This document shows positions 2,513 to 59,285 of a stretch of 64,000 nucleotides of DNA, in pieces; positions within the stretch are counted from its first letter, which is position 1; each line of letters begins with the position of its first letter. Source of the DNA: Neoechinorhynchus agilis. Taxonomy: Eukaryota; Animalia; Acanthocephala. The notes under the pieces are model-generated. The model searched no databases and was not told the DNA's origin. It worked only from the letters and a program-made list of their open reading frames with translations. The stretch is taken from the NCBI GenBank assembly GCA_051530055.1, contig CM121342.1, positions 8,943,480-9,007,479 on the forward strand, given 5' to 3'. The position numbers were made by a program, and so were the translations under genes.

Positions 2513-2676
2513 ATACTTACCTGGTTCCGGAGTTAACGGTGATCAAGGAGGCCGTTCTCCCGGGCAGAGGCCCCTCCATTGTACTTCGGTGGTGGCTGAC
2601 GTCTGCGATTTCCCCAAATCGGGGAAACTCGGGAATGGAATTTTTGGGTGTGGGGATTGCGTTCGCGCTTTCCCCT
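2513..2676 (+). ncRNA. U1: U1 spliceosomal snRNA
   Basis: Starts ATACTTACCTGG. Loop I GATCAAGGAG, loop II CATTGTACTT, stem III GCGATTTCCCCAAATCGGGGAAACTCG, Sm site AATTTTTGG, 3' stem ending GCGTTCGCGCTTTCCCC; ~164 nt. Confidence 0.97.
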
Positions 2677-3329
2677 TTAATTACAATATAACGAAAAGAC
2701 TTTTCCTATGCGGGGGAAGGAGCTTTCGGATTTCAATGGTTTCAGTTCGGTAAACCTTGAAACGATTGCGTTCGTGCTTCGTTTTGGCGTCGAGATAGCG
2801 CGGCGCACGACTTGGTCAAGCAATTGTATGAGAGATCGAGACGAATCACTGGCGAGCTGGGGCATTCCTCCTGCTGTGAATGATCTTATGGCTTAAAATA
2901 AAATTTAGGAATTTAAAAAAGCGTTGCGAAATTTAATGATTTAATCTTTTTTTAAAGAAAACAAGAATTTTTTAAGCAACCATACATAATTTATAGTTTC
3001 TTCAACGCTCCTATTCATCGGCGCTAAAAAAAGAAAAAAAATGATTTAATCTATAATTTCGAACGTGCAAAGTTCCGACGAGAACTGAGAATGCAGTATT
3101 TTGTTTCGGAATCTAAATTATACTAAAACTCATCAAGTAATTTATTCTATTTTCTTGGAATCGATTTATTTTAAAATTAAGAAATTCAGGTCAATCACAA
3201 ATATGAAAATTCGATAAGTCGTTTTTATGGTCGTCGCAGAACGTCTTGCAATTTTCCTCTCTTTTAAACATGAATGCGAAATTGCCAAAAAATTACGCAA
3301 TGACATAAAAAATTTGTTTTGATCACTCA

Positions 3330-5583: not shown

Positions 5584-6480
5584 TTACCACTGCGACATCC
5601 CGTAGTAGGGCATCTGCTGCATCCAACTTGACATTCCGGGCATCCAACTTGACATTCCTGGCATTCCGGGCATTTGTGGCATTCCAGGCATCCAACTTGA
5701 CATTCCTGGCATTCCGGGCATTTGTGGCATTCCAGGCATCCAACTTGACATTCCTGGCATTCCGGGCATTTGTGGCATTCCAGGCATCATTGGCAGATTC
5801 TTGGGTTTTCGTCTGCACATTTTTGATAGAGTCGACGCGGTTGAAAACTATTCGGCTATGAGTTGATGAACTTGCAACTCGAATCCTTAAATACTCACTT
5901 TCTAAGGCGAGAACACAAAGTGTTTTTTTTCAAAACACCATCGGGGCGAAAACAATTTGTTTTGGTCGCTTAAAATTGATAAACGAAGCACGAAATTAGA
6001 AGATTGTAACAATCTATATTGCTGAAGCTTTGAAGAAACCATAAATATATAATAACACATTTGAAGTAAGTATTTTGCTAAACTATAAAAACTTCCAAAC
6101 AATACCTATAGTCTGTGTAAAAAAATCGATTCACAAACAACCTTACTGCACTGATCAAAACTGGTTTTACAAGGAGATGAATAACATCCCCGTTGCCCAG
6201 CTGCACGCAAATCTTTTGTTGACTTGAAGAGCGACTGTTTAAATCAGTAACGAATGCCAGAACATTTAAAGTGATAACTGCTTTAAAATAAGCACATCTA
6301 TAAGGAATTGCATTTGCACTAATCACAGGGAGAGCAAATGAGCTATTGTTAACTTACCATTTTGTTAGTCTGAATGATCCTTGACGAAAATGTGCTCTTA
6401 AATGAGAATAGGAAAAAGTACGCGCTGAAGAAATAGTGCTAGTTGTTTTTGAACACAAAGGAACAATTCTTTGCCATTCT
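5584..6480 (-). pseudogene. Unidentified spliced gene or fragment with a Met/Pro/Gly-rich repeat C-terminus
   Basis: 39-nt GT-AG intron at 6357-6319 joins ...IIQTNK-C-ANAIPYRCAYFKAVITL...; a further GTAAGG donor follows; ends in an MPGMPQMPGMPGMSSW repeat ORF. Duplicated at 24330-25130. Confidence 0.4.
5620..5790 (-). repeat. 48-nt in-frame tandem repeat (MPGMPQMPGMPGMSSW x3 plus partial)
   Basis: catccaacttgacattcc recurs at 5620, 5641, 5689 and 5737. Confidence 0.9.
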
Positions 6481-15537: not shown

Positions 15538-15682
15538 TAGAACTGGTATGGACAAGAGAATCCAACTGTTTAATTAAAACAAAGCATTGCGATAGCTGTA
15601 ATCAGTGTTGCTGCACTATGACTTCTGCCCAGTGCTCTGAATGTTAAAGTGAAGAAACTCATTGAAGCGCGAGTAAACAGCG
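15538..15682 (+). pseudogene. Degenerate 28S rDNA fragment (region just upstream of the R2 site)
   Basis: agaactggtatggacaagagaatccaactgtttaattaaaacaaagcattgcga...ttctgcccagtgctctgaatgttaaagtgaagaaactcattgaagcgcgagtaaacagcg matches conserved eukaryotic LSU sequence. Confidence 0.93.
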
Positions 15683-16090
15683 CAGGGTGCCTCACCGCTC
15701 CGTAAATAGGAACATCCATCCTAATTTCTTTCACAAAGGAGATAAGCAGGGAGACCAGCTTTCACCTTTTCTATTTGCTCTATGCCTGGATTACCTAGCC
15801 AAATCCTTACATGATTTTAAGGTGGAATAACCTTCGGCGAGGGAGGAGAAGCTATCGTACTTCTTCTATGGAGACGACATCGTTCTTTTAGCAGATCAAA
15901 AAGACGATCTACAGAGGGCATTCAACTTAGCAGATGCTGAACTGAAGAAAATCGGACTGGGACTTAACGTTGCGAAGGACGCCACTTACAGCCAGCAGTT
16001 TTAGAAAACAGCAAGTTTGTTGCAAGCACTGAACTGGTTGTCAATTCGGAAGGGTGCCCGATTGAATCAATAATAGACGGTGAGAGGGTC
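15683..16090 (+). mobile_element. R2/NeSL-type RT fragment joined to the 28S fragment
   Basis: KGDKQGDQLSPFLFALCLDYL...YGDDIVLLAD...DLQRAF...LKKIGLGLNVAK. Confidence 0.8.
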
Positions 16091-24329: not shown

Positions 24330-25470
24330 GTAGTGCGACAACCGTAGTAGGGCATCTGCTGCATCCAACTTGACATTCCGGACATTTGTGGCATTCCGGG
24401 CATCCAACTTGACATTCCTGGCATTCCGGGCATTTGTGGCATTCCAGGCATCATTGGCGGATTCTTGGGTTTTCGTCTGCACATTTTTGATAGAGTCGAC
24501 GCGGTTGAAAACTATTCGGCTATGAGTTGATGAACTTGCAACTCAAATCCTTAAATACTCACTTTCTAAGGCGAGAACACAAAGTGTTTTTTTCAAATGT
24601 TATGGTCGCTTAAAATTGATAAACGAAGCACGAAATATAGAAGATTGTAACAATCTATATTGCTGAAGCTTTGAAACTATAAAAGTTAAGAAAAAGTTTG
24701 CATTTTCCCAAACAACACCTATGAGAATTGTGTAAAAAAATCGATTCAAAAACGACCTTACTGCACTGATCAAAACTGGTTTTACAAGGAGATGAATAAC
24801 ATCCCCGTTGCCCAGTTCTGCACGCAAATCTTCTTGAAATGATCTCTAAAGAGCGATTGCTTAAATCAAAAATTAATGCTGCGAATTACTTAAAGTGATA
24901 ACTGCTTTAAAATAAGCACATCTATAAGGAATTGCATTTGCACTAATCACAGGGAGAGCCAATGAGCTGTTGTTAACTTACCATTTTGTTAGTCTGAATG
25001 ATCCTTGACGAAAATGTGCTCTTAAATGAGAATAGGAAAAAGTACGCGCTAAAGAAATAGTGCTAGTTGTTTTTGAACACAAAGGAACAATTCTTTGCCA
25101 TTCTAAGCTTACTATAAAGCACAATAAGATTATTATTGCTCTCTCTCATCAAACTTGCAACAAATAAGAAAATAAACACAAAGAAAAGTCAAAAACGAGT
25201 GTTTTGGCCAAAGAATGAGGCCCTCTGACGGTTTAGCGATTGTTGGCTGGGGGGCTTCGGTGCTTGTATCCATTAACTCACTCAAACTTTGATCTTGAAC
25301 ACCGCTTACTTTTCTAGAAATTGGACGTTGATGTTCTTCGTTCGTCCGTTTCTTGGTCTCAGCATCGGTCCAATCCTGTTTTATATCCTCAGTAAGCCCG
25401 GTTTTCTCATTTTCGAAAATCGATTTTAGTTTAGAAGCCACTTGTTTGATGAGATGTTCTAGAATTGCAT
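24330..25470 (-). repeat. Segmental duplicate of 5590-6846 (MPG-repeat gene plus CRE 3' flank)
   Basis: Colinear near-identity with 5590-6846, with fewer 48-nt repeats. Confidence 0.85.
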
Positions 25471-33639: not shown

Positions 33640-34046
33640 ACCCTCTCACCGTCTATTATTGATTCAATCGGGCACCCTTCCGAATTGACAACCAGTTCAG
33701 TGCTTGCAACAAACTTGCTGTTTTCTAAAACTGCTGGCTGTAAGTGGCGTCCTTCGCAACGTTAAGTCCCAGTCCGATTTTCTTCAGTTCAGCATCTGCT
33801 AAGTTGAATGCCCTCTGTAGATCGTCTTTTTGATCTGCTAAAAGAACGATGTCGTCTCCATAGAAGAAGTACGATAGCTTCTCCTCCCTCGCCGAAGGTT
33901 ATTCCACCTTAAAATCATGTAAGGATTTGGCTAGGTAATCCAGGCATAGAGCAAATAGAAAAGGTGAAAGCTGGTCTCCCTGCTTATCTCCTTTGTGAAA
34001 GAAATTAGGATGGATGTTCCTCTTTACGGAGCGGTGAGGCACCCTG
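33640..34046 (-). mobile_element. R2/NeSL-type RT fragment (inverted duplicate of 15683-16090)
   Basis: Reverse-complement near-identity to 15683-16090. Confidence 0.8.
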
Positions 34047-34191
34047 CGCTGTTTACTCGCGCTTCAATGAGTTTCTTCACTTTAACATTCAGAGCACTGT
34101 GCAGAAGTCATAGTGCATCAACACTGATTACAGCTATCGCAATGCTTTGTTTTAATTAAACAGTTGGATTCTCTTGTCCATACCAGTTCTA
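34047..34191 (-). pseudogene. 28S rDNA fragment (inverted duplicate of 15538-15682)
   Basis: Reverse-complement near-identity to 15538-15682. Confidence 0.92.
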
Positions 34192-45290: not shown

Positions 45291-46359
45291 GGAACTCACA
45301 TCTACGTGTCGATATATGAGGATGTACCGGGATAAAATATTAAAATTGCCGTTTACTTCTAGTTTTATTTCCAATTTTGAACCAGTTCAGTTAAGGGCAG
45401 TATAGTTTCTTAAGCATTGATTATTTCCAATGTGATGAATCTTATGAAAATAAAATTGTCAATGATTTTGGTTCAAACATAATTGCCTTTTGGTGTTGTT
45501 TAACTAAATACGACGTTCCTAGGAAATCGACTCGATGATCATTCGAGCGAGACGGGAACAATTAATGGTTCATCGCTCAACAATGAGCATTGAAAAATGG
45601 AGCGGTGAACAGCAAAAACATTATAATTTTTAGCCAAGACGTTCTTATATTTCGTCAAAACGCAAAATAGATTTTTAAATTTTTATATTTTTTTCATCGT
45701 TCTCACAATTCAATGTTCTGAAATATCAGCCTCCATAAGATTCCGAAAATTGGATCTGCTGAAAGGTACTCGCTGTTTTGAGGGAACGCATTGCAATCAC
45801 AACATTATCGACCCCAATTATATTGCTCGCCATTGGCTTCTCTATTTGATTATTGGTAATTAGCAGATTGATACAATTAAAGAAGCAGAAAAGCAATGGA
45901 AAGGAGATTCAACCACGATTTGTTCAGCTCATCCGAGTGGCAGATAGTGAGACGGAAATGGAAGGAACGGATGCGGAAAGTTTTCGGATCCATATAAAGA
46001 ATTTAGGGAAAGCGGAATTGAAATGGAGGATTAAAATTTATTTGAACGATCTGCAAAGAAGATGAAGGAGGAAGGTTGAAATCAAATTGAAAAATGTTGG
46101 GTTGTGGTGGGCGAAGCAATAAACGGTGAAGAGTTATTTTTTTGTTATTATTAAAAGAAAAAAGAAGAAGCGAATGAAATTGAGATTGACGAATAATTTG
46201 AAAAACATGAGATGCGAACGGCAAGCAAGAAAGTGGAAATCGGGCGCTTAAACTGATATTGATCCGGATCAAATCCGCAAAACGTGTTTGGATGGCGATA
46301 AACACCACTGAAAAAAATTATAAGGTGTTTTGCGACTCCACTACCACTTATTCACGGTG

Positions 46360-48170
46360 CAATAAATATTCTTGATAGTCATTTTCGCATCGAGCAGCAT
46401 AAATTCACAGCAAATGTTTGCGACGAACGTCATTCGGTGTGCAAATGTACAAAATGGACATTTCGAATGTATAGATGAGAACGCAGATCGAACAAAAAGT
46501 GCAGCCCCTCCTCTTCCCATTTTTAATAAAAAATTATTCTCTTGGAACTCAGAAATTAATTTTCCATTGGAATCGTGCAGATCTCACGGTTCCGTGTCTA
46601 ATAACTCAATGAGCTGCTGCCCGAAAATCTTCGCTGCTATTAGCGAAGAGATTAAATTTTTATTATTTTCAAAATTAAAATTTACAAAACTAGATTTTAA
46701 TAATCTTCTTCATATTAATATAGTGAAGAAAGTCTTTTTACCAAAAACCAAGGGAATTATTTCAAAACCGGCTCATATTAGAGTAATTTCAATTCAGAAT
46801 CCTATAATCTCTTGCACAGAAAGAGTCGTAAATAGACTTATATACGAGTTTTTGGAAACTAAGAAGCTTATTCCTTCTTACTTCCATGGTTTTATCATAG
46901 GTAAAGGCGTTAACACTTTACTTGATACCCTTAACTGTATGAACAATATTAAATTTGTTCAAAAAATTCTTATTCAGCTTGACCTGAATAAAGCATTTGA
47001 TGCTTTGGATAGAACCTTTTTATGGAAAGCTCTTGAGGAGCTAAAAATTCCTCTGAATCTTATATATAAAATTAATTACTTACTTGAATCAAAGTCCTTT
47101 TATTATGAGGTGGATCCCTCAAAAACCAAATTCTTTTCCCGTTTGGGGGTCCCCCAAGGCTATCCACTATCCCCTACTCTTTTCTTTATCTACCTTATTT
47201 TTATCTTTAAGAAATTGAAACTACCCAGGGGTATCTTTCTTCTTATATATGCAGACGATATCTTTCTCTTCTGCAAGGCCAGGTCTTGTCCCTCTCTTTT
47301 ATGCAACATTCAAGCAGCTCTGAGTACCCTTAGCTCAAAGTTGAAATTGGCTAATCTAGCCACCAATGCCAATAAAACCTTTTTTATCCCCCTCTTCTAG
47401 GAAAGTTTTAATCAATAATTTAATTAAATACCACAATTTTAACTCCTCCAACATTAAGAAATTTACCAGGGTTCTAGGAATCGACTTCCCCTCCAAGACA
47501 TTTAGATTTTTAATTAATTCTTCGATTAATAATACCTTTCTAAAAATCAAATATGTTAAAAGAGTCAAATATCTTGATTTGAATTTTAACATTATATTAC
47601 CCGTTCTAAAAACTCTCATAGGAGGCTCTATCTGTTTTTTAGGGAGAGGTCGCCCTCCTGAACTTAGGTTTGCCTTCTTTTTTAGATGTTTTAATAAGCT
47701 TCATAAACTTTTATCAAATTATAATCTTATTCATGAGCCTCTTTTATCTTTCCTCTCACGCTTATTATTGGGAAAAATCTTATTCTTCCCTTCATTTTCT
47801 AATAAAGGTAAGTTCTTTTTATCTAATGAACAGGTATTCTACTTTCCCTCTCCTTCTAATCCCAACTTCAGCGTACAATGCTCCCACACAATTCGATTGG
47901 AATTCAATGATGCACACACTTTTTTTTGCAATAAGCAATTTCTTAATGGATAAAGATAGGAAAAAGTTAATGTCAAGAAAGTAATACTACCAGGATAAAA
48001 GATTAATTTGGTCTTTTGGTCCTCCGAGGTGGTCCGAGATCGACCTAATACTTGAGGTCCAATAGAGCAGACGAAGGACCAACGATAACTGCTAGACTAA
48101 CGAAAAACCCTAATTGTTATCTTACTAGTTGTATGGCCGTGTTAAATAAATAAAAAAATAACAAAAAGTT
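46360..48170 (+). mobile_element. 5'-truncated APE-type LINE (RT plus 3' UTR)
   Basis: RVISIQNP...FHGFIIGKG...QLDLNKAFD...GVPQGYPLSPTLF...YADDIF; 3' hairpin ttggtcct...aggaccaa; AATAAA and A-rich end at ~48150. Confidence 0.85.
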
Positions 48171-49439
48171 AGATATAAGAATCACAACAAGCTTGCGCTA
48201 AAAAGATTATATTAAAATTAATAAGAAGCGAATGTCCTGGATTCTATAGTTTGCGTAACACAAGAATTCGATCAAGCAATAAAGACAACACTTTATTGAA
48301 AATATCGCAATGACTATGACATAGGGTTAAGTCTGCGATTTTAGCCGACCTTCATGAGCAGAAGCAGCTACTCTGTTATGCCTCTGCTCATGGCCCACAA
48401 AGCTATGTGGTTCCAGTATTCAACCCAATGGTACATTACAAAATATTCGGTATATCGATCTCCATAGAGCGCATAATGGTGCTGATACACCTGAGTCAAC
48501 CAAGTGATTTCGTATTGGAAATCGTTGTAGATCCAGGCAAGTTCAAGGGCCGTGTACATTTCGTTTCAAGGATGAGAGATGAAGATGGTTCGTTGGATCG
48601 AAAACGAAGTGACGCTCCAACCAAGTAGACTTTAGCGAGTGCACAAACGGAGACTATGAATGGTAAACATAGCTACAAAATAGTACACAGGCGTTCAAAG
48701 TTTGTTCAACAACACGAAAATTAATCAGCAAACACGTTTACTAGAACAACTTTATAATGCTTCATAACGACGTAAACGAAAATCTTTTTAAGGAAAAATT
48801 GGGTTTCGAACGCGTAGAATAAAATTACGATCAGGCGATAAATTAAGTTGGAAAAGTTCAGAAAACATTTAAATGCGTAACGATAAACAAACATTTAAAT
48901 AAGCAAAGCCATACCGAAGAGGTGACGGCAACGAATTCGATAGAAGTATATTGCCCATTAAGCAAAGAAGCAGTAAAACTGCTGAGATTATTTCTCGTAG
49001 TCAACACGAGACATTCTGTTAACAAACGACAATTTCGGAAAATCGCGAACTAACAAAATGAACACAACAGCAGCAAAGATTCACGGATGCCTAATCTTTA
49101 AAAGGCGGGCGCAATTTTTACATGGGACAACCTTAAACCTTCCAACTTGCCGGGGAAATTCTACACCTTTGCGAGGGACAACTCGTTCTTAGACTAGAGA
49201 TCAAGTCACACGTCCTCTATTTCAATGCTCAAATCTACTTGGAAAATAAAGAATAAATCGGAAAGGTTGATGAGATTTTCGGACCAATCAAAGAATACTA
49301 TTTTTCAGTAAAAATGATGGATAATATGAAGGCAAATTCATTCAACAAGGGTCCATCCAATAGACTTCTTCTGGAAACGTCTCTGTTGCAAGCGCCAGGA
49401 GCGAAAAGCACTCAAGGCGGTGGAGCCCTTCTGATAACA

Positions 49440-51004
49440 CAGAGTTTGTTCAATTTCTTCAAAATGTTTCCTAACTGCGAGAATGATGAACAAAAGACAG
49501 TAGCATCCGATTTCACGAGATGATAATTTGTCTTCTTCTGATTCGCGAATTATTATAACCATTTTTAATTGTTTTGCAACACAGCATTTGTGCAATTTCT
49601 TTAAAATATTTCTTAACTGCGAGAATGATGAACAAAAGACAATAGCATCCGATTTAACGAGATGATAATTTGTCTTCTTCTGATTCGCGAATTATTATAA
49701 CCATTTTTAATTGCTTTGCAACACAGCATTTGTGCAATTTCTTTAAAATATTTCTTAACTGCGATAATGATGAACAAAAGACAGTAGCATGCGATTTAAC
49801 GAGATGATAATTTGTCTTCTTCTGATTCGCGAATTATTATAACCATTTTTAATTGCTTTGCAACAAAGCATTTGTGCAATTTCTTTAAAATATTTATTAA
49901 CGGCGAAAATTATGATCAAAAGATAGGGACATCCGATTTAACGAGATGATGATTTGTCTTCTTCAGATTCGCGAATTATTATAACCATTTTTTAATTGCT
50001 TTACAACACAGCAATTGTGCAATTTCTTTAAAATATTTCTTAACTGCGATAATGATGAACAAAAGACAGTAGCATCCGATTTAACGAGATGATAATTTGT
50101 TTTCTTCTTATTCGTTAATTAGTGTAATCAGATTTTAATTGCATGGTAGCACAGAATTTGTTCAATTTCTTTAAAATATTTCTTAACGGCGAAAATTATT
50201 ATCAAAAGATAGGGACATTCGATTCAACGAGATGATGACTTGTCTTCTGATTCGTTAATTATTGTAATCATTTTCTAATTGCTTTTAAAAGCACGAGTCG
50301 CTATCTATCATTCAAATATTTCAAAACAGCGAAAATGATGAACAAAAAGACATTGACATCCAATTTAAAGAGATGATGATTTGTCTTTTTCTGATTGGCG
50401 ATTTATTGCAATCAGTTTTTTAAATGTTTTTTCAAGACTTGTTCAGTTTCTTTAAAATATTTATTAAGAGCGATAAATTTAAACAAAAGACAGGGCATCC
50501 AAAATAAAGTTAGAATGATGATTTTCTTCTGATTCGCGAATTATTATAACCATTTTTAATTGCTTTGCAACACAGCATTTGTGCAATTTCTTTTAAATAT
50601 TTCTTAACTGCGATAATGATGAACAAAAGACAGTAGCATCCGATTTAACGAGATGATGATTTGTCTTCTTCTGATTCGTGAATTATTGTAATCATTTTTA
50701 ATTGCTTTGCAACACAGCATTTGTTCAATTTCTTTAAAATATTTCTTAACGGCGAAAATTATGATCAAAAGATAGGGACATCCGATTTAACGAGATGATG
50801 ACTTGTCTTCTGATTCGTTAATTATTGTAATCATTTTTCTAATTGCTTTTAAAAGCACGAGTCGCTATCTATCATTAAATATTTCAAAACAGCGAAAATG
50901 ATGAACAAAAAGACATTGACATCCAATTTAAAGAGATGATGATTTGTCTTTTTCTGATTGGCGATTTATTGCAATCAGTTTTTTAAATGTTTTTTCAAGA
51001 CTTG
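49440..51004 (+). repeat. ~142-nt tandem array, ~11 units; consensus resembles a C/D-box snoRNA plus spacer
   Basis: Unit starts at about 49472, 49614, 49756, 49898, 50041, 50184, 50324, 50465, 50605, 50747 and 50885. Confidence 0.92.
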
Positions 51005-53623
51005 TTCTCTGATAAAGATCGCTGGCTGCCCTCTGGTCTTTTGTTGCAAAAAGACCATAGTTGAAAACTCGCGAAACAAGAAAATTGACCCGGAAACGTC
51101 ACGAATTAAAAATTTGTTCAATTCTTACTTGTGGCCATCTCTTAGAGACACGACATTTTGACGTGGGAACTACGACAACCCAACTACGTATTCGGCCCCA
51201 TCAAATACCGTGGAAACACCCAACGCTACCGGGACACCAGGCCTAAATTCTGTTCATGAAATCACTACTTTGGGACAAGCAATTTCATTTGCACGTCAAA
51301 CACACGATCCTTATGCCGCTGCAATGATACAATTTGACGCAACCAGCCAAGACAGCCCAACTACGTATTCGGACCCATCAGGTACCGTGGAAACACCCAA
51401 CGCTACCGGGACACCAGGCCTAAATTCTGTTCATGAAATCACTACTTTGGGACAAGCAATTTCATTTGCACGTCAAACACACGATCCTTATCCGATGTCA
51501 CGACCCGTTGCCGCTGCAATGATACAATTTGACGCAACCAGCCAAGACAGCCCAACTACGTATTCGGACCCATCAGGTACCGTGGAAACACCCAACGCTA
51601 CCGGGACACCAGGCCTAAATTCTGTTCATGAAATCACTACTTTGGGACAAGCAATTTCATTTGCACGTCAAACACACGATCCTTATGCCGCTGCAATGAT
51701 ACAATTTGACGCAACCAGCCAAGACAGTTCAACTACATATTCAGACCAATCAAATGCCGAGGAAACGCCCAACGCTACCGGGGCACCAGGCCTCTCCAAA
51801 GGTTTATGCCCCGTTTGTTTAGACTCTTTTTCCATCACGAAATTCGGTGTTCTGCGCATTCATGGGCCCGTCAAATCACGTTGTGGAGGGTCTGGTCAAA
51901 TCCCGCGATCGCTTAAAACGGCAACACCAGAAAATCCGTCGACGCTCCCCGATGACGCCGGTAGTCTTCCTTCCGCTGCTGATCTCGTGCGTGTTCTTCC
52001 CAGGAACATTCTGAAACGGATCCCAAAGGGCGCACGATATCTAGTAGCTAAAGGATTCACTACACTTCTGCTGGACTGCTTCGAGCAAATTTTAAAGTCT
52101 TCTTGGACACGGCTCTTTGCCTTCCCTAGACTTGTACTTTCCGCTTTCGACAGTTGGGAGGAGTCCCTCACTGCGTTAATCAAAAGACGCCTCGTATCCT
52201 TTGACGAAAGTTTCTTGAGCATTGGCCGTTTAGCAAAGGAGGATTCCAAACAACGTGCGAATGAGACTAACTGCCATCGAGCATCTACGAGACAGCTTGC
52301 TAAGAACGTGTCTTCAAAACTCGCGGATGGAGATGTTTGGGGAGCTGCCCGTATTTTGTCCTCCTCTGATACGTTTGCAAGTGATTCGCCCTCCACACTT
52401 CAGGGTTTAAAGTTGAAGCATCCGCAAGGTTCAACCCAAACAGAAATTCCTACATGTTCCGTCCCTCAAAGGCACTCCACTTCGACAGTTGAACTGAGAA
52501 TGGCCATATCCTCCTTCGCCAATGGCTCTGGTCATGGTCTCGATGGACTTCGTCCTCAGAAATTAAAGGATAAGATGTCGTTCTCAGTTGGAGATGTAGG
52601 CCACTCCCTTGTTACCCATCTTTGTCGACTAGTCGACCTTTTCATCGAAGAAAATTTACATCCGCAGGCAATAGAGTTATTTTTTGGCGCATCTTTGTGC
52701 GCTTTGAACAAAAAGACTGGTGGGATTCGTCCCAACGCCGTTGGCTCTGCTCTACGTCGGCTCGTAGGTAAAATCCTTTGCAACCGTATTGCAGAAGGGA
52801 TATGGCAGCAACTTCGCCCAGTTCAACTGGGATGCTGCACACCCTGCGGGTCCGAAGCCATTGTCCACGCACTCCGCCAGTTTATCACCAATCGTTCAAC
52901 GCCGTGTGTGATTTTGAAGTGCGACTTTAGAAATGCTTTCAATTCCATTTACCGTACCGCTCTGTTTGAGTCACGTACCAGAAGCTTTTCCTTATTTTCT
53001 CAACGCATGCGGGACCCCGACTCCTTTGCTGTTCAACGATCATCTCATTTGGTCCGAAAGAGGAGTACAGCAGGGAGACCCTCTCGGTCCAATCGCTTTC
53101 TCCTTTGCAGTTAATCCAATAGCGCACTCTCTCCGGTCCAACTTTAACGCTTGGTACCTTGATGACGCTACCCTCGGAGGTGATCCCTCCGTAGTACTGC
53201 GCGATCTGGAGACACTCGTAAGGGAGACTGCGAGATTGGGCGTTGAGCCGAATTGTTGGTAATGAACATCGAAGACGAGTCATCGCAGAGCGAAATCGTC
53301 GAAGGTTCTAGAAATCTGGCTCCCGGTTTTAAATTGATCACTCTGGACCGGCTGAGTCTTCTAGGGAGCTGCGTTTTTGATTCAAATTTGGAAAATGAGA
53401 TCGACCATCTATTCCTGAACATCATGATGCTGTGCGATAGAGTCCGAGAACTTTCGTCACACGAGGCTCTATTCCTGATCAAGAATACCCTCTTCATCCC
53501 GAAACTACTTTATAAACTGCGCATGGCTTCTTTTGTCAAGCACGTCGATAAGTTAAAGAAGCTCGATGACATTGTGAAGGCGTGTCTCAAGCACATTTTA
53601 AATATCCAGCTATCAGACGAGGC
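51005..53623 (+). mobile_element. CRE-clade retrotransposon (copy 3) with expanded N-terminal repeats, 3'-truncated
   Basis: 634-aa ORF: three 59/65/59-aa repeats, then the same zinc-finger/RT sequence as copies 1-2; GVQQGDPLGP and WYLDD in the +1 frame. Confidence 0.9.
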
Positions 53624-56460: not shown

Positions 56461-57147
56461 GTTAGTAACAATATTCAGTTTATAAATAAAATTATAGGTC
56501 ACGTAAAAATTAATCATTGTTTAGTAACCATATTTCTCGACCTGCGGAATTAAGAGATAAACTTTATTTAAGCATCGATCAAAAGCTTAAGAAATTGTTT
56601 TTCAAACTGCAAGTTGATTCTTTGTCCGCTTTAATCCTTTTTTAACAAATTATTTCTAACAAAAATCTGGAATTTTAATAACCGTTTCAATCGTTGCAAT
56701 TTTGGTTAAAACGATGGCAGTTTTATCTTATCAGAGTGTTTCGTTTATTCATTTCTTCAAGAGGTGACTTATGATTTTTTTAAATGTGTACTTTCTATTG
56801 TATTTGACTTTTTGGGTTTAAAAGAAAAGATTGCTTGTATTAATGTAAGAGTGGATTTTTCTAACTAAGAATAAAATTCGATCGAGTTTTTCCTTCGAGC
56901 AGTTCGGTTCATTTTCTCTATACGGCGAGTTTTTCAATTTTCGAGACCTCAACCTCTTTATCCCGGGGTCGATGTTTTCGAAACTTAAGATTAATACACA
57001 TCTTGCGGGTTTGAGCCAGATTAATATCAGTTGGGTCACAGTTGGAGATTCTAATGAATTTCCTGCCGAACTACTCATACATGCCGCTCCAAACGTAACT
57101 TATGAAGCAGCAGAATATGATATGAATGCGAGAAGAATTAATTGTAA

Positions 57148-57190
57148 ACATTCAAATTTTCGAGGCCTCAACATCCTTATCAAGCATCTA
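57148..57190 (-). ncRNA. Degenerate minimal hammerhead at the PLE 3' end
   Basis: Minus strand tgc-TTGATAA-g-gatgt-tgag-gcctc-GAAA-at-TT-gaa; same family as the 1-38 and 191-228 copies. Confidence 0.6.
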
Positions 57191-57238
57191 AAATCACATG
57201 TAGCAGGAGAGCTCATTTGATCCCTGGACGCGGGACCA

Positions 57239-58240
57239 TCAATTTCTGAGGTGACGCTTCACCCTATGCGCTGCTGCTCCACGGAGGTTATTTGTCCGAA
57301 GGACAAGAGCGAAGTTGCTCTTGTTGCCTTCCATTGTCCTCTCCGCGTTGATGAGAAAGGCTTCCTTGATCAGCCTTCTTTGGAGCCCGCTCTCTACCAT
57401 TTTCACCTTCGTTCCTCCGAAGTCGGTTGTGTGGTCATTTCGCACGGCGTGGTTGAAGATGGCCGATGGTACGTCACTCTGTTTGAGTTCGTATTCATGC
57501 TGCCTCACTCTTTTCCAAATACCCTGCTTCATTTGTCCAATATAGACATGGTTACAGTCCTTGCAGGGGACAGAGTAGACCACGCAATCATTGCCCTTGA
57601 GTTGCTCCGGCTTCGACTTGAAAACGCTGTTCAAATTCACTCCTGCAGGGTGGTACGGTATGAGATTCACCGAACTCGATTTCGTCGCAATGTGAGAGAG
57701 GAGGTTTCTCATTTTTGAAGAACGGTAATGAACTCGGATGAATCTCGTTTTCTTCTCGCTCAACTTGTCTTCTTTTCCTTTTTCATGCCCCTTTTTTCTT
57801 CCTTTTGTATGGGCCAGTGCCTTCTTAATGACGTGGGTGGGGTACTCAAGGTCTCTTAGTTTCCGCTCGATGATGTTTATGCTCCTTTTTGTCACATACT
57901 TATTGCTCCCTATTTCCAGCGCTCTCGAGAATAGATTGCAGACAGCGTTAGCCTTATATCTGTTGGAGCTTTCGTATTTGAGGACAAGTTCCACGATCAG
58001 ACGAATGGTGTGGCGATGGGTTCACCGCTAGGTCCAGTACTCGCCAGCATCTTCATGATCCAATACGAAAAAGAGCTATTGGTGAAGTTCCCACAAATCG
58101 AAGCTTGGTTCAGGTATGTCGACGACGTGTTCGCTATCACAAACGAGGTCCCTAACAAAATGAAGCTCGAGGAACAGCTGAACGCGATAAACCCGTCGAT
58201 AAAGTGGACAATCGAACCAGAAGACAAAAATGGGCGGATA
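57239..58240 (-). mobile_element. PLE with 5' inversion: thumb plus GIY-YIG on minus (57994-57239), RT core inverted on plus (58010-58240)
   Basis: Minus: LFSRALEIGS...VVYSVPCKDCNHVYIGQMKQGIWKRVRQH...TMEGNKSN. Plus: MAMGSPLGPVLASIFM...WFRYVDDVF...IKWTIEPE. Confidence 0.9.
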
Positions 58241-58849: not shown

Positions 58850-59285
58850 GCTAAGATAGCAATTTTTTTAGGAAAAAAAACCTTTTGCTTGTGGGGGTAC
58901 GACATGTCGAGAAGTGGGTATTTTTATTAAAAAACGTTGGAGATGTATATTTATTCTTGAAACAATGGCCTACAATTTTTTATTCTTTCACTCTTAAGGT
59001 AGCAATTTTTTTAGGAAAAAACCTTTTGCTTATGGGGGTACGACATGTCGAGAAGTGGGTATTTTTTATTAAAAAACGTTGGAGATGTATATTTATTCTT
59101 GTAACAATGGCCTACAATTTTTTATTCTTTCACTCTTAAGCTAGCAATTCTTTAGGAAAAAATAAAACATTTTTCTTGTGGATGTTGGACATGTCGAGAA
59201 GTGAGTATTTTTTACCAAAAAACGTTAGAGATGTAAATTTATTCTTGTAAGAATGACCCACAATTTTTTATTCTTTCACTCTTAT
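58850..59285. repeat. ~142-143-nt tandem repeat, 3 units
   Basis: Units start at about 58852, 58995 and 59137 (taagntagcaatt...gacatgtcgagaagtg...ttctttcactct). Confidence 0.9.

Follow-up and report, generated by a model that had tools for sequence, protein, structure and literature searches.

We describe a tandem array of box C/D small nucleolar RNA (snoRNA)-like modules in a 64,000-nt stretch of the genome of the acanthocephalan Neoechinorhynchus agilis (C2:8943480-9007479; referred to here as the window), which was analyzed together with the remainder of the assembly (46,219,100 bp in 102 contigs, with C2 accounting for 16.38 Mb). We consider it probable, at roughly 0.78, that this array is a pseudogenized, segmentally duplicated copy of a snoRNA array of the U74/snR64/snoR44 type. 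Judged from its sequence, the window array most likely makes no working guide for ribosomal RNA (rRNA); the apparently functional copy, an array of ~39 units on contig C1, is referred to here as the master array. New in this work are the family of pseudo-modules to which the window array belongs, the unit-by-unit account of its lesions, a correction as to which guide is the relevant one, and the evidence for neutral decay.

Tandem Repeats Finder (TRF) reported a 142-bp period at window positions 49436-50983 (10.9 copies, 82% matches) and, in the same array, a 427-bp higher-order period corresponding to three units. This count, together with an alignment of 11 units, bears out the ~11-copy tandem array proposed by a first-pass annotation of the window. 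Each unit comprises a ~72-nt box C/D snoRNA-like module followed by ~70 nt of AT-rich spacer, and the consensus of our independent alignment (stem GCGAG/TTCGC, box C ATGATGA, 17 nt, box D' CCGA, 9 nt, box C' ATGATAA or ATGATGA, 11 nt, box D CTGA) reproduces the stem, boxes, and spacings that had been given before. Homology between the paralogous arrays and the window array stops at position 51007.

A whole-genome search with one unit as the query gave at least 76 matches at seven loci (Table 1). Units of the C1 array are near-identical and canonical, with a GCGAA/UUCGC stem, box C AUGAUGA, the guide GAAAGACAGGGACAU, box D' CCGA, box C' UGAUGA, and box D CUGA. A unit was scored as fully intact if it had all four boxes, an 11-bp guide match, and a terminal stem of no less than 5 bp; by this measure, 27 of the ~39 units in the master array were intact, versus 0 of 11 in the window. 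A few master units carry box mutations, and three share an 11-nt deletion that removes the guide. The exact string of guide plus D' box occurs 30 times in the genome, in every case within the C1 array. At L016:2040-7343, the master array forms a two-unit higher-order repeat in which two spacer variants alternate, with a loop reading either TTTTTAGAG or TTTAAAGGG. Approximately 22 dispersed one-mismatch matches to AGACAGGGACATCCAA were considered as retroposed snoRNAs and rejected, as they belong to an unrelated GC-rich repeat devoid of C/D boxes.

In master units, the D' guide AGACAGGGACA is followed by one nucleotide and then by the D' box CCGA, and it pairs with UGUCCCUGUCU of large-subunit (LSU) rRNA. 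The match to the LSU of the animal itself (L036:1432-1442) is perfect over 11 bp and starts at the second nucleotide upstream of D'; it was equaled by 5 of 200 composition-preserving shuffles searched against all rRNA pieces and U1. Because most assembled copies of the ribosomal DNA (rDNA) carry insertions, the LSU target stretch was located by pattern search (L036:1370-1560, reading ...GAGAUUCCUACUGUCCCUGUCUGCAGCC...GGGGAAAGAAGACCCUG...). Box C/D snoRNAs direct methylation to the fifth nucleotide from the D or D' box, a rule that puts the first C of CCC in LSU GUCCCU at the predicted 2'-O-methylation position, equivalent to yeast C2337, Arabidopsis C2338, and human C3820. In these organisms, the same LSU site and sequence context are served by Arabidopsis SnoR44, which guides 25S C2338 and A2327 (PMC8053127), by yeast snR64, which has been linked to 25S C2337 (PMC2806949), and by human U74, which guides 28S C3820 (primers in PMC6856654 span GATTCCCACTGTCCC). 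On this ground of common site and context, the module is, as far as guide and target can tell, a member of the U74(SNORD74)/snR64/SnoR44 guide family. Assignment to the snR76/SNORD88 site (C2197/C3680) was considered and rejected, as re-indexing taken with the cited papers gives snR64/U74/SnoR44. The guide core of the master units, AAAGACAGGGACAUC, is identical to the consensus of the Rfam family RF00357 (snoR44_J54), against which these units score 41.3 to 42.6 bits (E of ~1e-6, best 8e-7, in a 591-nt search), still below the gathering threshold of 48.

Along the window array, the units follow the order A A A B A B C x A B C, where x is degenerate and A, B, and C are three types distinguished by their lesions (Table 1). 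Type A (units 1, 2, 3, 5, and 9), with 5 of the 11 units the commonest, carries the D' guide AGACAGTAGCA. Type B (units 4, 6, and 10) carries the guide AGATAGGGACA and a box C reading ATTATGA or ATTATTA, and thereby lacks a box C guanine that normally forms the sheared G.A pair of the kink turn. Type C (units 7 and 11) has the guide AGACATTGACA, a D' box reading CCAA, and a weakened stem. Members of the box C/D class have box C (RUGAUGA) toward the 5' end and box D (CUGA) toward the 3' end, closed by a terminal stem of 4 to 6 bp, in an RNA of 60 to 100 nt that is bound by fibrillarin, Nop56, Nop58, and Snu13; their guides, of at least ~10 nt, end 1 to 2 nt from box D or D'. Box C, box D, and the terminal stem occur together in units 1, 2, 3, and 9 and, with a stem of 3 bp, in units 7 and 11; box C or box D is mutated in units 4, 5, 6, 8, and 10. 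The internal pair, D' CCGA with C' UGAUGA or UGAUAA, is present in units 1, 2, 4, 5, 9, and 10, and D' is mutated in units 3, 6, 7, 8, and 11. The degenerate unit 8 has counterparts that terminate the arrays at three other loci.

The fate of the guide complements that of the boxes. Pairing of the D' guide with its LSU target (...UGUCCCU(G/A)UCU...) extends over 11 bp without a mismatch in master units and over 11 bp with one G.U pair in units 4, 6, and 10, and the match to the snR64-type LSU site is not retained in types A and C or in unit 8. No window unit with intact boxes has an above-chance guide match to the rRNA pieces, U1, U2, or U6: the best rRNA match was equaled by 47 of 200 shuffles for the type A guide and by 107 of 200 for type C, and the type A, type C, and D guides pair with U1, U2, and U6 over at most 6 to 9 bp, rich in G.U. 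An Rfam scan of the units, which the first-pass annotation had proposed as a check, returned solely C/D snoRNA families on the plus strand, all under their gathering scores; at permissive settings, the best family was RF00357, with 22.9 to 30.1 bits for window units, in every one of which guide or boxes are mutated. The earlier suggestion of an amplified snoRNA cluster or a snoRNA-derived satellite thus stands insofar as the units derive from a real C/D snoRNA and falls insofar as the array is most likely not a working cluster. That part of the array is decaying was rightly noticed, and the mutated boxes listed for units 4, 5, 6, and 8 are correct; the list was incomplete, since units 3, 7, 10, and 11 are damaged as well.

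The second line of evidence comes from the sequence duplicated with the array. Approximately 1.27 kb upstream of it (window 48160-49425) is common to all seven loci at 85 to 98% identity, and the last 330 nt of this segment correspond to Gar1. Next to the master array lies an intact GAR1 (L016:1342-1914), an intronless gene of 190 aa with N- and C-terminal GAR domains, whose Pfam Gar1 match spans the full model at 95.8 bits. No second stop-free GAR1 emerged when the genome was searched in six frames, the remaining copies all containing stops. A partial first snoRNA unit starts ~10 nt past the stop codon of the intact gene, and AATAAA is absent between that stop codon and the first master unit. 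Gene and array together make up the presumed working locus, C1:19084841-19090941. Compared with the intact gene, the window GAR1 is without the ~200 nt bearing the ATG and the N-terminal GAR domain and is missing a further 18 bp; its C-terminal GAR domain is gone together with the stop codon, the remnant being fused to the D-box end of half a unit at the junction GGTGGAG|CCCTTCTGATAACACAG. The 5' deletion, like a premature TAA, is common to all six GAR1 pseudo-copies, which points to one dead module ancestral to all. These lesions disable the gene relative to its intact paralogue and recur from copy to copy, as in a family of pseudogene modules.

The flanks bear on how the modules spread. In the window copy, the duplicated module is split by an insertion with reverse-transcriptase (RT) open reading frames (ORFs) that span 46372-47953 and include a YADD motif (RVT_1, 93 bits at 46372-47397, plus strand); at the other loci, the homologues of 46298-46500 and of 48160 onwards are contiguous and lack it. 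Window segments 45497-46500, 51005-52040, and 57066-58000 recur inverted around C2:879xxxx, and the inverted sharing of the downstream flank places the window copy within a large segmental duplication. Spread by retrotransposition, through 3' transduction from the upstream RT element, was considered and rejected: because the RT stretch occurs in the window copy only and the inverted paralogue has both flanks, DNA-level segmental duplication fits better. Elsewhere, the pseudo-modules at C1:12226630-12227451 and C1:12256640-12257436 are nearly identical and lie 30 kb apart, which indicates a recent 30-kb tandem segmental duplication, and contig C38 holds two partial modules arranged head to head. 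Within the downstream flank of the window array, a 177-bp tandem repeat (3.4 copies, window 51174-51793) lies inside a 634-aa open frame (51210-53114, plus strand), the C-terminal part of which gives a weak RVT_1 match (22 bits). This element is shared with C2:8793064-8793746 and probably represents a further retroelement whose N-terminal region is internally repeated.

Table 1. Positions of the window array, its units, and the surrounding module (window numbering unless a contig is named), with the number of unit matches at each locus
Feature	Position	Strand	Remarks
1.66-kb insertion with RT ORFs	46500..48160	+	Private to the window copy
Upstream part of duplicated module, 5' of GAR1	48160..49102	+	88-98% identity with all other loci, including master
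GAR1 pseudogene	49103..49426	+	Gar1 fragments 49137-49253 and 49257-49425; PF04410, 27.3 and 35.2 bits
Premature TAA	49254..49256	+	CAA (Gln) in intact GAR1; common to all six pseudo-copies
Tandem array	49436..51007	+	11 head-to-tail ~142-bp units and 9-nt stub of a 12th; TRF, unit alignment, nhmmer/hmmalign
Unit 1 core, type A	49476..49546	+	C ATGATGA, D' CCGA, C' TGATAA, D CTGA, 5-6 bp stem; D' guide mutated to AGACAGTAGCA, at most 8 bp complementarity to LSU
Unit 2 core, type A	49618..49689	+	Every box present; extra guide mutation AGACAATAGCA, at most 6 bp to LSU
Unit 3 core, type A	49761..49830	+	D' box mutated (GCGA); guide mutated
Unit 4 core, type B	49902..49973	+	C box ATTATGA, D box CAGA; guide AGATAGGGACA retains 11-bp LSU pairing, one G.U
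Unit 5 core, type A	50045..50116	+	D box CTTA; guide mutated; D guide TTTGTTTTCTT
Unit 6 core, type B	50188..50256	+	Guide retained; C box ATTATTA; D' region TTCGA; D guide 3 nt shorter
Unit 7 core, type C	50328..50400	+	C, C', D intact; D' CCAA; stem AGCGAA/TTGGCG; guide AGACATTGACA with two central mismatches to LSU
Unit 8 core, degenerate	50469..50538	+	C box lost (AAATTTA); C' region rearranged; D' CCAA; guide AGACAG-GGCA (1-nt deletion)
Unit 9 core, type A	50609..50680	+	Best preserved; four canonical boxes, 5-bp stem; guide mutated (AGACAGTAGCA)
Unit 10 core, type B	50751..50819	+	D', C', D intact; C box ATTATGA; D guide 3 nt shorter; guide retained (11 bp, one G.U); top Rfam score of the window, 30.1 bits
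Unit 11 core, type C	50891..50963	+	Identical in kind to unit 7
Downstream flank	51005..52040	+	Recurs inverted at paralogous C2:8793064-8793746
Unit matches, master array	C1:19085461-19090941 (L016)		40 (nhmmer profile)
Unit matches	C2:8796200-8797837		12 (nhmmer profile)
Unit matches	contig C38		5 (nhmmer profile)
Unit matches	two C1:122xxxxx loci		3-4 each (nhmmer profile)
Unit matches	C2:8860350		3, partial (nhmmer profile)
Unit matches, window array			11 (nhmmer profile)

Selection was gauged by comparing divergence among the parts of the unit. Units of the master array diverge from their own consensus by 0.4% in box C, 1.6% in the stem, 2.3% in the D guide, and 7.0% in the spacer. When window units are set against the master consensus, the boxes have diverged by 9.1%, the stem by 10.9%, the D' guide by 20.7%, and the spacer by 23.2%; the D' guide of the window has drifted at about the spacer rate. 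Differences between pseudo-copies represent changes after the death of GAR1, and here, with units paired by nearest match rather than true orthology, boxes differ at 13 of 231 positions (5.6%) versus 31 of 746 (4.2%) for spacers (Fisher p = 0.36). The first-pass annotation had said that boxes mutating as fast as spacers would speak against it, and between pseudo-copies this is the pattern found. Since boxes differ between pseudo-copies as much as spacers do, they appear to be unprotected here. Two blocks adjoining the stem show box-like conservation, namely, 14 nt upstream (AAATATTTCTTAAC, 8% divergence) and 10 nt downstream (AATTATTGTA, 11%), compared with 28% for the rest of the spacer. The motif TAAAATAT, considered as a TATA promoter of each unit, was rejected because it begins ~17 nt before the stem, too near for the standard distance from TATA to start.

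The first-pass annotation had looked to the D guide for an rRNA target and had overlooked the D' guide because the latter is mutated in the commonest window unit type. Its 8-nt complementarity to AAGAAGAC is indeed present in the animal's own LSU; it is neither above chance overall nor the guide of this family. Across all rRNA, 24 of 200 shuffled guides score equally, and the D guide was therefore rejected as the main rRNA guide. The match consists of 8 Watson-Crick bp lying 54 nt 3' of the D' target, and within 100 nt on either side, 1.5% of shuffles equal it. The A that it would select, which we take to be about E. coli A2060, falls between G2396 and G2410 in Arabidopsis numbering, an interval with no methylated site in the examined part of the RiboMeth-seq table of PMC8053127. 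In the master array, conservation of the D-guide element UUUGUCUUCUU is good, and this element may add an auxiliary pairing or act as a second, weak guide.

On these data, we propose the following history, in which the order of events is inferred. The working locus would consist of GAR1 followed by ~39 near-identical 142-bp units, each encoding a ~72-nt snoRNA that would direct 2'-O-methylation by fibrillarin of the LSU C equivalent to yeast C2337, and the master array would be expressed by read-through transcription from GAR1. The whole module (upstream region, GAR1, and array) would have been copied first. One copy would then have lost the GAR1 start and gained the TAA stop, and this dead module would have been recopied by DNA-level duplication to at least six places, the window among them. 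In the drift since then, type A would have retained its boxes and lost the guide, type B would have retained the guide and lost the critical G of box C, and type C would have lost the D' box and the center of the guide. The window array would still resemble a snoRNA array because it is young.

Several observations weigh against a dead array. Units 1, 2, and 9 retain four boxes and the terminal stem and could still assemble stable small nucleolar ribonucleoproteins (snoRNPs); in units 4, 6, and 10, the 11-bp guide persists (one G.U), and a degree of departure from the box consensus is tolerated in C/D snoRNAs. The upstream region, which possibly bears the GAR1 promoter, is likewise still retained. 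Relative to the master, window boxes are less diverged than spacers, which could be residual selection, although we attribute it to constraint that acted on the master lineage. The comparison between pseudo-copies, for its part, rests on few, non-independent differences, and omitting the poorly paired unit 8 leaves ~2.4% for boxes versus ~3.4% for spacers (by subtraction from the tallies; no significant difference is expected). Most of these points, together with the conserved blocks flanking the stem, would suit an array that works as part of an amplified, multilocus snoRNA family, its units transcribed and processed, at least types A and B forming snoRNPs, and type B, even with its altered C box, acting as a guide for the conserved LSU cytosine. 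We nevertheless hold this to be unlikely, given that no unit combines boxes and guide, that the type B lesion removes the guanine of the sheared G.A pair and the shifted alternative box, AUGAUCA, would be separated from the stem by 6 nt instead of 3 nt, that boxes show no protection between pseudo-copies, that the co-duplicated GAR1 is dead, and that 27 intact units are present elsewhere.

A narrower possibility is that type A has become a neofunctionalized orphan snoRNA, the change of GGA to UAG in its D' guide providing a new target in an mRNA, another noncoding RNA, or the shifted LSU register CUACUGUC (8 bp). The three-base change recurs in units of the window, C2:8797xxx, and C38, its bearers are the commonest window type with the best-kept boxes, the altered bases lengthen complementarity to the adjacent register CUACUGUC, and units 1, 2, 3, and 9 have kept an intact D guide. 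However, the best rRNA match is 8 to 9 bp, at the chance level reported above, pairing with U1, U2, and U6 does not exceed 6 bp, and further mutations have arisen in unit 2 (guide), unit 3 (D'), and unit 5 (D), which argues against constraint; we rate this possibility as improbable. It is similarly doubtful that transcripts of the dead GAR1 still drive the array, with type A units 1, 2, and 9 and their counterparts at C2:8797xxx and C38 persisting as stable orphan snoRNAs that have a newly evolved D' guide and a conserved D-guide element. If true, that would be an animal case of snoRNA neofunctionalization by way of a duplicated module of protein gene plus snoRNA array. A coincidental resemblance of ordinary satellite DNA to C/D snoRNAs would accommodate the tandem arrangement, the several loci, the higher-order periodicity, and the AT richness, but is hardly credible in the face of a canonical stem and canonically ordered and spaced boxes, a guide core that exactly matches a curated family, the 11-bp match of the master to a conserved methylation site, and the selection on boxes visible in the master array.

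Pseudogenization of a duplicated U74/snR64/snoR44-type array, which we prefer, can be set beside several known systems. The module resembles U74/SNORD74, snR64, and SnoR44/J54/Z268 (RF00357, clan CL00069) in its C/D architecture, its D' guide core AGACAGGGACA, its GUCCCU first-C target, and its length of ~72 nt. It differs from plant SnoR44, in which a D guide serves A2327, in having an unrelated 11-nt element in that place, and its scores against RF00357 (42.6 bits for the master, 22 to 30 bits in the window) stay under the gathering score. The human U74 gene is single-copy and lies in an intron of GAS5, in contrast to the tandem arrays of N. agilis. With SNORD115/116 and SNORD113/114, the array shares dozens of tandem C/D copies, many of them degenerate, and the lack of an rRNA target. 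In those clusters, however, units are ~1 to 2 kb and each snoRNA sits in an intron of a repeated noncoding host, whereas a unit here is 142 bp and allows only a 5-nt exon, and the ancestral guide here, unlike theirs, is a classic rRNA guide. The likeness to the intron-hosted SNORD115/116 drawn in the first-pass annotation is accordingly not supported: direct reading of the window units found no splice donor that would give an exon longer than 5 nt, leaving each unit without a usable donor. The splice-site-like ttttaat...caacacag noted in that annotation does occur in type A spacers; its acceptor-like CACAG is absent from most master spacers and so is not a conserved feature. Trypanosomatids, Euglena, and plants have working head-to-tail snoRNA clusters, presumably processed from long precursors and usually with several different snoRNAs per repeat; the present case is in an animal, has one snoRNA per unit and a master array linked to GAR1, and in the window is a pseudo-array. 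Searching the literature for invertebrate snoRNA satellites or tandem arrays brought up no relevant precedent, and the published N. agilis genome paper does not mention snoRNAs (PMC12690905).

Taken alone, the window array is unremarkable, being in all likelihood a dead copy of the gene for a familiar guide RNA. The family as a whole suggests that the snoRNA arrays of this acanthocephalan behave as segmentally duplicating, satellite-like DNA; as pseudo-arrays are left behind, copy counts made from sequence only would overestimate the number of working snoRNA genes. It also places what appears to be a working U74/snR64-type locus 3' of the only intact GAR1, linking a C/D array to the gene for an H/ACA snoRNP protein, and this physical linkage suggests cotranscription. 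Finally, the six pseudo-modules provide a natural control for the features that decay once selection is lifted (the guide, then the boxes), set against those conserved in the master: boxes, stem, D-guide element, and flanking blocks of 10 to 14 nt.

Several features outside the array were noted. Fragments of LSU rRNA (Rfam LSU model positions 2133-2332) lie in the window at 15561-15754 (plus strand) and 33975-34168 (minus strand), and also at L015:4738-5500. They end in ...AACTATGACTC, directly abutting a reverse-transcriptase element, and several rDNA units have the same junction, from which it appears that an rDNA-inserting element lacking long terminal repeats (a non-LTR element) carried its 5' LSU flank to non-rDNA sites. 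Among the rDNA copies examined on C1 and C2 (L025, L034, L036, and L015), no uninterrupted LSU was found; the interruptions comprise an insertion after H69, an element ending just before AGCCAAATGCC, and a 60-bp tandem repeat replacing ~330 nt. The window further contains a full-length U1 small nuclear RNA gene (2513-2677, plus strand; RF00003, 131.5 bits), a 146-bp tandem repeat in three copies (58852-59284), and two arrays of the 9-bp unit CATTCCTGG with higher-order periods of 39 to 48 bp (5619-5795 and 24350-24458). Elsewhere on the same contig, at C2:1338535-1378624, two full U6 genes are accompanied by several partial U6 matches of ~50 nt at a regular spacing of ~240 bp, which may represent a U6-derived tandem repeat.

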